DNA of 64,000 nucleotides from Hyalangium minutum (GTDB lineage: Bacteria; Myxococcota; Myxococcia; Myxococcales; Myxococcaceae). Location: assembly GCF_000737315.1 (NCBI RefSeq), contig NZ_JMCB01000008.1:496001-560000 (forward strand). Direction: 5' to 3'. This document shows, one piece after another, positions 48,473-54,251 of this stretch (positions are counted from its first letter, which is position 1; every line of letters begins with the position of its first letter). Made by a program: the position numbers and the translations under genes. Below the pieces are notes generated by a model. It did not search any database. It was not told the origin of the DNA and saw nothing but the letters and a program-made list of their open reading frames with translations.

Positions 48473-48672
48473 GGCCGCTTGCGTCCAAGCAGATTGCCCC
48501 TGTTGGGCCGCATGTGCCCCCAGTGTGACCCTCCAGCGGGGAATTGAACGGGACGAGACGGGACGGAGCGGAGGAGCGATCCACTGTGAGATCAAGGCGT
48601 TAGCCGGTAACAGCGCGACCTGCTTGGGGTTTTGCTTCCGCCTTGATGCGGGTTCGATTCCCGCAGCCTCCA
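48473..48672 (+). repeat. att-like element ending in a tmRNA-3'-end-like sequence, copy 2
   Basis: ggggttttgcttccgccttgatgcgggttcgattcccgcagcctcca at 48626-48672. Confidence 0.7.
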
Positions 48673-48818
48673 AAAGCGGTGAACGTCCGCAACTTGCCCG
48701 CCTAAGCTGCCCCTCATGCCCTGACGGCGAGCAGGACACGCGCGATACTCAGGCCCGGGCCGCGTGCTTCTGGTACAGTGGCCGACCCGCAGAGATAGGA
48801 ATTTCAAAGGAGCGCATT

Positions 48819-50840
48819 GTGCAGCTTGTCTCGGTGCAGGTGGGGCCGTTCAAGTCAATCGACCAACCACAGACGGTCAAGATCGACCCAGAGGTAACCG
48901 TCTTCGTCGGTATGAACGAGGCGGGTAAGACCGTGTTCCTTCAGGCCCTTCATAAATCCGACGATGCCGCCGGTGTTGCCGTGTTCGACCCTGTTGAGGA
49001 TTACCCTCGCAAGGACTTGTCGGCCTATCTCAGGCAACACACGACGAAGCCCGCCCAGGTCACGAAGCTTACCTACAAGCTTACAGCGGGCGAACTGGAC
49101 GAGTTGAACCGCGACCTGCATACGAATCTCCCCGCCGACTTCGAATTTTCCCTGCTCCGGCATTATGACAATACACTACGGATCCAACTGGGGATCGACG
49201 AAAAGCCTGTCCTGGATCATCTACGCCAAGATAGCCGGCTCAGCTCGGATGTGAGGGCAGCGCTAGCGGCAGTCACATCGGTAAGAAGTATCCCCAAAGC
49301 GACCGAGCATCTCAGCCTTACAGACAACGACAAAGGCTGGCTCGCCTCGGTCCAGCAGCGCATCACCAAGACGCAATGGGAATCCGTGACTCAAGCTGAA
49401 GCTTGGAATTGGTTGCAACCCCGCCTCCCAAAGTTTGCCTTCTTCGGAGAGTACGAGCTCCTGCCGAGCAAGCTGAATCTTACCGACTTGGCACGACGTG
49501 TTGAACAGGCGAAGTCAATCACGACGCCCCAGAATGCTCAGCAGGCCAAAGCTTCACAAAAACCTCTGGAGCCTCAGCATCGTGCGGTACTTGCCTTATT
49601 GAGGATGGCTGATATCTCCGTAGAAGACTTCACGCGACCTGGAGGCGGGTATGAGTCCCTCAAGGCTAGGCTTGAAGCCATCTCCATCAAGCTGACCGAC
49701 GAAATACTGGAGTTCTGGAAACAAAACGAAGATCTAGAGGTCGAAGTCGACATTCGGCTCGATCCGGACGAACAGCCGCCTTTCAACAGTGGGCCGAACA
49801 TCTACCTGCGCATCAAGAACCGGCGGCATCGCGGGGTCAGTACACCGTTCCACCAGCGGAGCAGGGGCTTCACCTGGTTCTTCAGCTTTCTGGTGTGGTT
49901 TGACAGCGTGCAACATCAACTAGCTGTTGGCGACCCTGGGGACCGTGACCTCATCCTGCTGCTGGATGAGCCCGGGCTGAATCTCCACGCACTCGCCCAA
50001 GCCGATTTCCTGCGGTACATCGACAGATTGGCTGAGAAACATCAAGTACTCTACACCACGCACTCTCCATTCATGGTCCACTCTGACCGGCTTCACCAAG
50101 TCCGTGTCGTCGAGGATCGCGTAAAGGTGGGTACTGTGCTTTCCGATAATGTGAGCAACTCAGATCCGCGAACCATCTTTCCACTACAGGCGGCATTAGG
50201 CTGGACCCTAGCGCAGAACCTCTTTATTTCGGAGCGAAACCTATTGGTGGAAGGGCCCTCCGACCTGCTGTACCTGCAGGCGATCTCATCCCTCCTTGAG
50301 GCCCAAGGACGAGTTGGTTTGCGTGAGGAAGTAACTATCGTACCGACAGGTGGGCTCGACAAGGTGGTCACCTTCGTTGCGTTGCTTGGGGCAAACGGGC
50401 TCAAGCTTGCGGTCCTTCACGACTATCGGGGAAGGCCAGAGCAGAAACTTGAGGACCTTGTGAAGCAGAAGATGATCGCCCCCAAGGCCTTGCTCGACGT
50501 TTCGCAATTCCGAGATCTCGCCAATATCGGAAAGAGCAGCCGAGCATCGGACATCGAAGATCTCCTGCCGGTGAGCCTGTATCTCGATTACTTCAATAGG
50601 GCTTTCAGCCAGCAACTAGGTAGCACGAAGGTCACCGAAGCGGACTTGCCGGCCGGGGACCGGGTTCTTGATCGGATTGAACGACATCTGTCCACCACTA
50701 GAATACATATCCGCCCCAGTGGAGGCTTCAATCATTACGCCGTGGCCTCCCTCTTCGTCAGTAGTCCTCCATCCAGTCTCGACGCGGATGCCCTGGCTCG
50801 GTTCGAGTCGTTATTCCGGGCAGTGAATGGGCTGTTCTGA
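48819..50840 (+). CDS. OLD-family-like ABC ATPase plus TOPRIM protein (673 aa), candidate anti-phage nuclease
   Basis: Walker A GMNEAGKT, signature RSRGFTWFFSF, Walker B LLLDEPG, H-loop TTHSPF and TOPRIM LLVEGPSD; AT-shifted codons. Start at GTG 48819. Confidence 0.85.
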   Translation: MQLVSVQVGPFKSIDQPQTVKIDPEVTVFVGMNEAGKTVFLQALHKSDDAAGVAVFDPVEDYPRKDLSAYLRQHTTKPAQVTKLTYKLTAGELDELNRDLHTNLPADFEFSLLRHYDNTLRIQLGIDEKPVLDHLRQDSRLSSDVRAALAAVTSVRSIPKATEHLSLTDNDKGWLASVQQRITKTQWESVTQAEAWNWLQPRLPKFAFFGEYELLPSKLNLTDLARRVEQAKSITTPQNAQQAKASQKPLEPQHRAVLALLRMADISVEDFTRPGGGYESLKARLEAISIKLTDEILEFWKQNEDLEVEVDIRLDPDEQPPFNSGPNIYLRIKNRRHRGVSTPFHQRSRGFTWFFSFLVWFDSVQHQLAVGDPGDRDLILLLDEPGLNLHALAQADFLRYIDRLAEKHQVLYTTHSPFMVHSDRLHQVRVVEDRVKVGTVLSDNVSNSDPRTIFPLQAALGWTLAQNLFISERNLLVEGPSDLLYLQAISSLLEAQGRVGLREEVTIVPTGGLDKVVTFVALLGANGLKLAVLHDYRGRPEQKLEDLVKQKMIAPKALLDVSQFRDLANIGKSSRASDIEDLLPVSLYLDYFNRAFSQQLGSTKVTEADLPAGDRVLDRIERHLSTTRIHIRPSGGFNHYAVASLFVSSPPSSLDADALARFESLFRAVNGLF

Positions 50841-50873
50841 TCAACGCCTGTTGGGTAGAAAATGCGCATAAGA

Positions 50874-53998: not shown

Positions 53999-54019
53999 GA
54001 TGCCGGTTGAGGGTGTGGG
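53993..54019 (-). mobile_element. Isolated IS91-like terminal motif
   Basis: gaataggatgccggttgagggtg matches 58942, 62111 and 50875; its TAG is the stop codon of the kinase fusion. Confidence 0.5.
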
Positions 54020-54226
54020 ACGCATAGGAGGGACAGGGGCACTGTTAGGTGCGAGGGAGGGGCATAGAGCGGCAGCGGAGGGTGGCTGACAGGGTTCCAG
54101 GGCCGTACGCGGGACGGGTGGCACCCACGGAACTCCGACAGGCCCGCTGTCAAAATGCTGCGGCTGGAAGTCCTACGGGACCTACGCTCGACCGTGTGAG
54201 ATCGCCCTCGCCAGAAGTTCCAAGCG

Positions 54227-54251
54227 GCGGGTTCGATTCCCGCCGCTTCCA
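54227..54251 (+). repeat. tmRNA-3'-end-like sequence, copy 3
   Basis: gcgggttcgattcccgccgcttcca. Confidence 0.65.

Follow-up and report, generated by a model that had tools for sequence, protein, structure and literature searches.

OLD proteins are nucleases in which an ABC-type ATPase is joined to a TOPRIM domain. They are classified by their genomic context. In Class 2 the gene lies next to one for a UvrD/PcrA-like helicase, and in Class 3 it is associated with a retron reverse transcriptase (PMC10568477). Class 1 proteins, such as P2 Old, the Thermus scotoductus OLD (PDB 6p74), the V. cholerae OLD and E. coli YbjD, come from a single gene that has neither a helicase nor a retron partner. 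Whether they can defend unaided is given as an open question in the field's 2023 review; two papers report Class 1 OLDs that do defend (PMC12392090; PMC13261556). A gene of this family is found in Hyalangium minutum, in a 64,000-nucleotide (nt) stretch of contig NZ_JMCB01000008.1 (positions 496,001 to 560,000) that is called the window here. It is one of the two genes of a 5.6-kb islet at 48.6-54.25 kb. The other gene encodes a fusion of two kinase-like domains with a nucleosidase domain of the PNP type, and is called the kinase-PNP gene.

PNP domains are also known as immune effectors. Cap17 of CBASS and DtcC of Detocs have the PNP_UDP_1/MTAN fold and are fused to signalling modules. PNPs of the Cap17 clade cleave ATP and dATP (Rousset et al. 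2023). CBASS includes a CD-NTase, and Detocs consists of the histidine kinase DtcA, DtcB and a PNP response regulator with a receiver domain. Hanks-type kinase domains are found in the single-gene defences PD-T4-6 and Stk2.

The islet is probably a mosaic, a horizontally acquired piece of a larger variable region, and its two genes would be autonomous single-gene immune modules. This reading draws on domain content, the status of motifs, the distribution of the two families, the boundaries of the modules and the pattern of selection. The OLD-like gene is a further member of an already known OLD kind. The pseudokinase-PNP-kinase gene is a new variant among ATP-nucleosidase effectors; it is the more novel part of the islet, and worth testing. 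A preliminary description of this DNA had proposed a defence islet and, within it, a new two-gene system. The former is a reasonable reading, the domains of both genes being typical of anti-phage proteins. The latter is not supported by a survey of homologous loci.

Two genes of foreign composition

From 48.1 to 54.3 kb just two long coding open reading frames (ORFs) remain, as judged from the ORF listing and from guanine-plus-cytosine content (G+C) by codon position. Both lie on the + strand, between direct repeats at 48648-48674 and 54227-54253. The preliminary description had counted two co-oriented genes with anti-phage-type domains as the only intact cargo between these repeats, and Pfam and the ORF listing agree. 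Both genes are foreign in composition. The OLD-like gene has a G+C of 55.9% and the kinase-PNP gene 63.0%, compared with 66.7% for the window. At third codon positions the values are 0.66 and 0.72, compared with 0.80-0.95 in neighbouring genes. Along the islet, G+C is 56% at 48.5-51 kb and then 61-65% up to 54.5 kb. Drops in G+C occur at 30-33 kb, at 48.5-51 kb and again at 62.5-64 kb of the window. The closest named relatives of the window's proteins are from Hyalangium, Archangium, Stigmatella and other Myxococcota. Exact look-ups of both islet proteins gave no match.

The OLD-like gene (48819-50840, + strand) encodes an ATPase-TOPRIM nuclease of 673 amino acids, of the stand-alone Class 1 type. 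It starts with GTG, 6 nt after the sequence AAGGAG. In Pfam the protein matches AAA_15 (9e-18), AAA_21 (1.7e-11) and OLD-like_TOPRIM (PF20469; 28.3 bits, cut-off 23.2). No curated NCBIfam family takes it. Its best solved relative is 6p74 (1.4e-9), with GajA at about 1e-4. In an alignment of 12 diverse homologues, the Walker A motif GMNEAGKT, the Walker B motif LLLDEPG and the motif TTHSP are invariant, and so are the TOPRIM residues E478 (in LLVEG), D514, H534, D535, D578, E580 and D581. E478 aligns with the TOPRIM glutamate of 6p74. The canonical DxD is not placed confidently; HDYRG aligns where the T. scotoductus protein has HDED. A ratio of non-synonymous to synonymous substitution rates (dN/dS) of 0.08-0.20 against relatives indicates strong purifying selection on the gene.

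The family is very large. Homologues with 60-68% identity to the window protein occur across distant phyla, including Acidobacteriota, Bacteroidota, Planctomycetota, Verrucomicrobiota, Zixibacteria and many Proteobacteria. No conserved neighbour is found within 5 kb of the family's genes, the largest family in common being present at 4 of 46 genome loci. Two closer homologues (L049 and L050, 83-88% identity) have only 48765-50845 in common with the window and stand in unrelated contexts. Since a conserved helicase or retron reverse transcriptase neighbour is absent, the gene falls into Class 1 by the context definition (PMC10568477). A tRNA gene lies within 2 kb of 3 of 38 OLD loci, and in a scan of IMG/VR an OLD homologue (57% identity) turned up on a single viral contig. 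Both observations would fit cargo of islands or prophages.

Like the Class 1 proteins named above, the window protein has an N-terminal ABC-type ATPase with an inserted region, a C-terminal TOPRIM domain and a gene to itself. Unlike them, it has a conserved C-terminal extension of about 130 amino acids, and it is longer (673 compared with 528-586 amino acids). Only about 160 of its residues align with 6p74 by sequence. Related ATPase and TOPRIM modules are found in Gabija (GajA-GajB) and PARIS (AriA-AriB). Unlike these systems, the window gene has no GajB-like helicase, no separate AriB and no conserved neighbour of any kind. The adjacent GajA and GajB that define Gabija are not found here, as the islet contains no helicase gene.

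The kinase-PNP gene (51302-53998, + strand) encodes 898 amino acids. Pfam finds Pkinase twice (5e-79), on either side of PNP_UDP_1 (residues 327-563, 1.8e-17). The N-terminal kinase-like domain (51341-52156, + strand; residues ~14-285) has HRN for HRD and AFS for DFG in an alignment with PknB, and retains the Gly loop, the VAIK lysine, the alphaC glutamate and APE. Because of the two replacements, it is predicted to be a catalytically dead pseudokinase. The PNP/MTAN-fold nucleosidase domain, probably of the Cap17-like immune type, follows at 52190-53050 (+ strand; residues ~297-583). A conserved linker (residues 586-645; 53057-53236) then leads to a C-terminal Hanks-type kinase domain (53237-53995, + strand; residues ~646-898). 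The C-terminal domain retains HRDIKPAN, DFD and APE in the PknB alignment. Its alphaC glutamate is replaced by glycine in an RFFRGARRM motif. The whole family has this glycine without exception, which makes it a family trait and no sign of decay.

The PNP domain scores 237.7 bits (5e-71) on the PADLOC profile PDLC00759, "Effector, PN-superfamily" of CBASS, and covers the whole PNP part of that profile. A control sequence of the housekeeping MtnN of E. coli scores 54.6 bits. On the NCBIfam model for MtnN itself the window domain reaches 72 bits, compared with a cut-off of 169. An AlphaFold2 model of the domain has a predicted local distance difference test score of 88, and its top Foldseek matches are MTA/SAH nucleosidases, with template-modelling scores of 0.72-0.79. 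The motifs EME and RGISD align with the catalytic motifs of MTAN, and GEMEAAG and IRGISDFGD are invariant in the family. The nearest PNP relatives are fused to AAA_22, NACHT, NB-ARC or TPR modules. The table of Rousset et al. lists PNPs of Hyalangium, Stigmatella and Archangium in the Cap17 clade as NLR-like. The profile evidence favours the immune clade over the housekeeping MtnN, DeoD and Udp clades, and the domain is a putative ATP nucleosidase of the Cap17 kind. A scan of IMG/VR found no viral contig with the PNP domain.

PADLOC had been suggested as a check in the preliminary description, and its profiles match both proteins. For the OLD-like protein Old is the best profile (6.7e-22), then AriA and GajA. 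The kinase-PNP protein matches the CBASS effector profile, and both of its kinase domains match the generic PD-T4-6 profiles, at up to 1.9e-115.

The window PNP resembles Cap17 and DtcC in its fold, in its intact catalytic motifs and in its strong, full-length profile score. It is likewise fused to signalling modules, and its presumed regulator is a phosphotransfer enzyme, as in Detocs. Unlike the systems of Cap17 and DtcC, it comes without a cyclic-oligonucleotide sensor, receiver domain, histidine kinase or STAND NTPase, and within a single polypeptide it is flanked by a pseudokinase and a Hanks-type Ser/Thr kinase. Pfam finds no cyclic-nucleotide sensor, receiver or histidine-kinase domain in the protein. 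The islet, with its two genes, contains no CD-NTase and, by Pfam, no sensor domain of CBASS. Detocs does not fit either, its receiver and histidine-kinase domains being absent. PD-T4-6 and Stk2 share with the window gene a Hanks-type kinase domain in a stand-alone gene, but in the window protein this kinase shares its polypeptide with an enzymatic effector and with a second, dead kinase. The pseudokinase-PNP-kinase architecture goes unmentioned in the main text of Rousset et al. 2023 and in part of its supplement.

About 18 protein clusters combine a PNP with a kinase domain. Wherever the source organism is named, it is a myxobacterium, and the genera include Corallococcus, Myxococcus and Hyalangium. 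The family has a core of PNP, very conserved linker and kinase, corresponding to window residues ~300-898. C-terminal additions vary and may be a metallophosphatase, an FGE-sulfatase or none. The N-terminus also varies and is EVE-like, an active-looking kinase (P0008) or a pseudokinase. Most members carry an N-terminal domain of about 180 amino acids for which Pfam has no model. It matches the N-terminal part of PDB 6yex (4.4e-8; residues 22-139 of P0007). The entry is labelled "HNH endonuclease"; we take it to be the EVE-HNH modification-dependent endonuclease VcaM4I, the matched part presumably being its EVE-type reader of modified DNA. A kinase-like N-terminus is found only in the window protein, its near-identical copies and P0008. 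The N-terminal slot of the family may be read as a swappable sensor. In a metagenome scan with the full kinase-PNP protein, generic kinases of 30-40% identity dominated the results, and no usable context emerged.

Selection differs along the kinase-PNP protein. When the window gene is compared with two 97%-identical copies, the ratio of non-synonymous to synonymous polymorphism (pN/pS) is 0.80 and 1.15 in the pseudokinase, 0 and 0.09 in the linker, and 0.16 and 0.19 in the C-terminal kinase. Most of the amino acid changes are in the pseudokinase, and their excess there over the rest of the protein has Fisher p values of 0.04 and 0.03, from small counts and from two comparisons that share changes. 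Over the whole gene, dN/dS between near-identical copies is 0.46-0.51.

Homologous loci and the spacer

Evidence on whether the two genes belong together can be obtained from loci where homologues of one or the other are found. A 4.25-Mb metagenomic contig (L001) carries window 51130-54251 at 97% identity among unrelated genes, and has no OLD gene within 10 kb of this kinase-PNP module. This agrees with the suggestion in the preliminary description that the genes may have arrived independently. Directly upstream of the start of homology, L001 has 3-4 tandem units of about 31 nt (…CAGTGATCGGCATGGCCCGGAAC…) at 9730-9825. None of 51 fetched OLD-family loci has a kinase-PNP gene within about 10 kb, and none of four further kinase-PNP-family loci has an OLD gene. 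The two counts tell against the proposed pairing. The kinase-PNP homologues P0007, P0011 and P0015 stand alone among ordinary genes, without recognisable defence neighbours. At the locus of P0007 (L132), a Big_9/Kelch-repeat gene (13183-15342) lies 1.7 kb downstream of the homologue. It has 64% DNA identity (over 36832-39053) to the Kelch-repeat gene at 36.6-39 kb in the window.

Two further contigs come from a single sequencing run, SRR31724269. One (L048) carries the OLD-like gene at 98% identity and corresponds to window 48629-50893, while the other (L139) carries the kinase-PNP gene at 97% identity and corresponds to window 51188-54251. Both end inside the repeat element of the spacer described below. 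Their outer flanks differ from the window, with bPH_2 genes on the left of L048 and a Kelch-repeat gene on the right of L139. As both end within the spacer and stem from the same run, the two contigs may be adjacent in a second genome with different flanks.

Another case of proximity is found in Archangium gephyra SDU49. Here the OLD homologue has a convergent neighbour, at a distance of 60 nt, that encodes an LRR-Roc-COR protein of 1126 amino acids with a C-terminal PNP domain (L003, 12083-15463). This PNP scores 65.6 bits on the Cap17-type profile, which is the level of MtnN, and therefore belongs to a different clade. We take both cases, SRR31724269 and A. gephyra, to be co-location in variable or defence regions and not functional dependence.

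The spacer between the two genes is 461 nt long. A scan for promoters and terminators found two promoter-like sites, with 1.1 expected, and no terminator between the genes. Most of the spacer is filled by a repeat element (50869-51249, - strand), which may be what is left of an IS91-family transposase gene at its 3' end. The repeat, about 400 nt long, recurs in the window. It is 69% identical over 402 nt to a sister copy at 62104-62502, and a partial copy lies at 46194-46280. The sister copy sits directly before the stretch of 54-57% G+C (62.5-64 kb) that reaches the end of the window. The preliminary description had named an IS91 remnant between the genes. The peptide of the sister copy does match the C-termini of IS91-family transposases (E 3e-3 to 7e-3; 39-41% identity over 49 amino acids), but the minus-strand peptide of the spacer copy has no Pfam match of its own and no plasmid match by tblastn. 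The HUH/Y2 transposase gene and the defined ends of an IS91-family insertion sequence are not found either, as the remnant spans at most ~125 codons, with no Pfam match. The assignment to IS91 is thus plausible but weak.

One-ended transposition of the IS91/ISCR type was considered as a vehicle for the genes and set aside, as in S. erecta the remnant is present in inverted orientation with respect to the OLD gene there. Because of this inversion, a shared ancestral linkage of OLD gene and remnant is not supported either. A different similarity is found just after the two genes. The ~85 nt after each stop codon (50865-50950 and 54021-54105) are 73% identical (E 2e-4), and may be a terminal sequence that the two modules share.

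Repeats and the surrounding region

Islands that target tRNA or tmRNA genes have repeats resembling the 3' end of the target at both ends, often several in tandem, and a foreign composition. The islet is similar in these respects. Unlike such islands, it has no integrase, no intact target gene and two subtypes of repeat.

The direct repeats at 48648-48674 and 54227-54253 are identical at 25 of 27 positions. Each has a core in the form of a 17-nt T-arm, GCGGGTTCGATTCCCGC, after which come an acceptor-like heptamer and an A. Four copies of the core are present in the window, all of them on the + strand: 30056 (with two mismatches), 30978, 48648 and 54227. Shuffled sequences give an expectation of 0.56 copies, and none of 100 shuffles reaches four. 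The repeat pair that the preliminary description had noted is therefore real, but it is not unique to the islet. In about 150 kb of other fetched myxobacterial loci, the motif occurs only at the ends of these same modules.

An alignment separates the copies into two subtypes, which differ upstream of the T-arm and agree only over T-arm and acceptor. Subtype A comprises 30978, 48648 and the copy of L048; subtype B comprises 30056, 54227 and the copies of L001 and L139. The islet thus has a different subtype at each end, which counts against a single integrated element with attachment (att) sites. The left remnant (48470-48675, + strand, subtype A) belongs to a unit of about 127 nt that is also present, uninterrupted, at 30877-31003. 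In the islet this unit is split by a 78-nt insertion into a core (48626-48673; 94% identical to 30956-31003) and an upstream part (48470-48547; 81% identical to 30877-30955). The right remnant (54215-54253, + strand) is of subtype B.

The repeats had been called att-like and tmRNA-like. In favour of the first label, the borders of homology fall at the repeats. Homology of the window begins at 48629 with L048 and stops at 54251 with both L001 and L139, beyond which the window and these two contigs have three different downstream contexts. The ends of the modules therefore coincide with the repeats. On the other side, the ORF listing and codon-position G+C reveal no integrase gene between 48119 and 54253, the target tRNA or tmRNA is not intact, and the subtypes differ. 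The second label is weak. The T-arm and acceptor do resemble the 3' end of a tRNA or tmRNA, but the geometry fits a tRNA equally well. In the window ARAGORN detects neither a tRNA nor a tmRNA gene, and no Rfam family reaches its gathering score. Local tmRNA matches occur only at the islet repeats, with 19 bits on the left and 21 bits on the right compared with gathering scores of 47 and 84, and Rfam has nothing at 29.9-31.2 kb, where the other two copies lie. The repeat units fold no better than shuffles, except for the T-arm hairpin of the right copy. In our reading, the repeats are probably the remains of attachment sites, now decayed, from the 3' end of a tRNA or tmRNA. As such they would mark a variable region from about 30 kb, where G+C drops, to at least 54.3 kb.

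Two other readings of the repeats were dropped. A functional mini-tRNA or mini-tmRNA does not agree with the missing Rfam match at 30 kb and the shuffle-like folding. A divergent full tmRNA gene at 48321-48675 would have a fitting length, and one frame contains "...LATLAA". It was rejected because ARAGORN and Rfam make no call, the frame runs on without a stop at that point, and the sister copy at 30.9 kb puts the length of the unit at only ~127 nt, here with the 78-nt insertion.

The two repeats at 30 kb (30044-31003) bracket 0.9 kb of about 59% G+C, and G+C stays low to about 33 kb. Between them lies an ORF of 125 amino acids (30433-30810) without a Pfam match. This segment looks like the start of the variable region of the islet.

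The neighbourhood can also be compared with a relative of 92% identity (L135). There, window 60516-59165, with AhpC- and DsbA-type genes, is joined directly to 47140-48118, with a TMEM175-family gene. Past 48118, L135 runs on with a clpB-like gene, which the window lacks. Synteny breaks at 47140, 48118 and 59165, and this arrangement implies an inversion or translocation in the neighbourhood, which these breakpoints mark as heavily rearranged. A clean empty site was sought through homologues of the flanking TMEM175 gene; only rearranged contexts were found, and the insertion is not delimited.

To the right of the islet, 54463-54630 is probably a truncated or frameshifted gene of the glyoxalase/VOC family. 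Its Pfam Glyoxalase match (E 0.0038) is below the cut-off, and a C-terminal motif is readable in another frame. In L139 an intact glyoxalase gene lies about 2.5 kb downstream of the kinase-PNP gene. Next in the window is a gene for an RCC1-repeat protein (54645-55658), which contains six DNA repeats of 111 nt (54874-55540), 65-78% identical to a reference copy.

Proposed mechanism and alternatives

If the islet holds two autonomous immune modules, each would work on its own. In the OLD module, a TOPRIM nuclease is coupled to an ABC-type ATPase into which a dimerisation region is inserted. The module would nick or degrade DNA during infection, by analogy with the OLDs of P2, T. scotoductus and V. 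cholerae.

The kinase-PNP protein would act by depletion of nucleotides. Its fast-evolving N-terminal pseudokinase may be a sensor or decoy, in the slot that holds an EVE-like reader in most relatives. Sensing would alter the pairing or the autophosphorylation of the kinase domains, and the PNP domains could thereby be brought together or released. MTAN-fold enzymes act as dimers. The active PNP would cleave the N-glycosidic bond of ATP or dATP and so starve the phage; the result would be abortive infection or growth arrest. The proposed logic is like that of Detocs, in which a PNP effector is gated by phosphorylation, but with a eukaryote-like Ser/Thr kinase. A bolder form of this proposal is a tentative one, and we would not expect it to be right. 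It makes the PNP-kinase family a new single-polypeptide class of abortive infection, in which a Ser/Thr kinase would gate the destruction of ATP and the pseudokinase would be a decoy or sensor for a phage factor.

Several points weigh against two autonomous immune modules. The enzymatic activities, the trigger and the defence phenotype of both genes are predicted from sequence. The activity of the C-terminal kinase is uncertain, its alphaC glutamate being missing, and the matches to PD-T4-6 are generic to any Hanks kinase. The dN/dS of 0.46-0.51 for the kinase-PNP gene could come from a relaxation of constraint and not from an arms race. Many Ser/Thr kinases of myxobacteria have non-immune roles. 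The block 48629-54251 may have moved, or been kept, as a unit in the genome behind SRR31724269, leaving room for co-selection, and the A. gephyra OLD homologue has a PNP gene of a different kind beside it.

A rival reading takes up the two-gene system of the preliminary description: both genes would co-operate in one defence system and travel as a 5.6-kb cassette bounded by the att-like repeats. In the window the genes are neighbours with the same orientation, L048 and L139 break off inside the same spacer repeat (at 50893 and 51188) with outer flanks unlike those of the window, and a PNP-effector gene adjoins the OLD homologue in A. gephyra. Yet the adjacency of the two contigs is only putative, the A. 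gephyra PNP is of another clade, and L001 has the kinase-PNP module alone. The OLD family lacks a conserved partner at all 46 genome loci, no other locus of either family combines the two genes (0/51 and 0/4), the genes differ in G+C (55.9% and 63.0%), and a transposase remnant on the opposite strand lies in the 461 nt between them. A co-operating pair is therefore very unlikely. Decaying cargo is quite improbable as well. On this explanation one or both genes would be inactive relics in a rearrangement hot spot, which would account for the catalytic residues missing from the N-terminal kinase, the missing alphaC glutamate of the C-terminal kinase, the kinase-PNP dN/dS of about 0.5 and the pseudogene debris around the islet (transposase remnant, glyoxalase fragment, decayed tRNA-like sites). 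It does not account for two frames that are intact over 673 and 898 codons, for the strong purifying selection on the OLD-like gene, or for the conservation of linker, C-terminal kinase and catalytic PNP motifs, with the alphaC glycine found family-wide.

A non-antiviral role of the kinase-PNP protein is unlikely but deserves to be weighed beside these. It would be an enzyme of myxobacterial signalling or programmed cell death, for instance in development, kin discrimination or nucleotide-derived signalling, that lies by chance beside a mobile OLD gene. This would suit a family confined, by its named sources, to Myxococcota, with homologues among ordinary genes and no recognisable defence neighbours. 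PNP domains have been proposed as generators of nucleotide-derived signals in conflict systems of multicellular bacteria (Aravind and co-workers, PMC7159879). However, the window PNP reaches 237.7 bits on a CBASS-effector profile, its closest relatives come as fusions with STAND/NLR-type modules, and an EVE-like domain, otherwise found in a modification-dependent nuclease, is present in most of the family. The gene is also compositionally foreign and part of a mobile module at three different loci.

The reading as two autonomous immune modules has consequences for both genes. As the two-gene system is not upheld, cloning effort aimed at the pair can be saved. The clade of stand-alone OLDs of about 660 amino acids, which lack a partner, is a good candidate for asking whether Class 1 OLDs defend alone. 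The kinase-PNP fusion points to ATP-nucleosidase effectors that can be connected with Hanks-type kinases and with an EVE-like DNA reader. If the proposed gating is true, it would add a route of PNP control beside cyclic nucleotides, His-Asp phosphorelay and STAND oligomerisation. It would also widen the repertoire of triggers for metabolite-depleting immunity, and link such immunity to the large Ser/Thr-kinase repertoires of myxobacteria.

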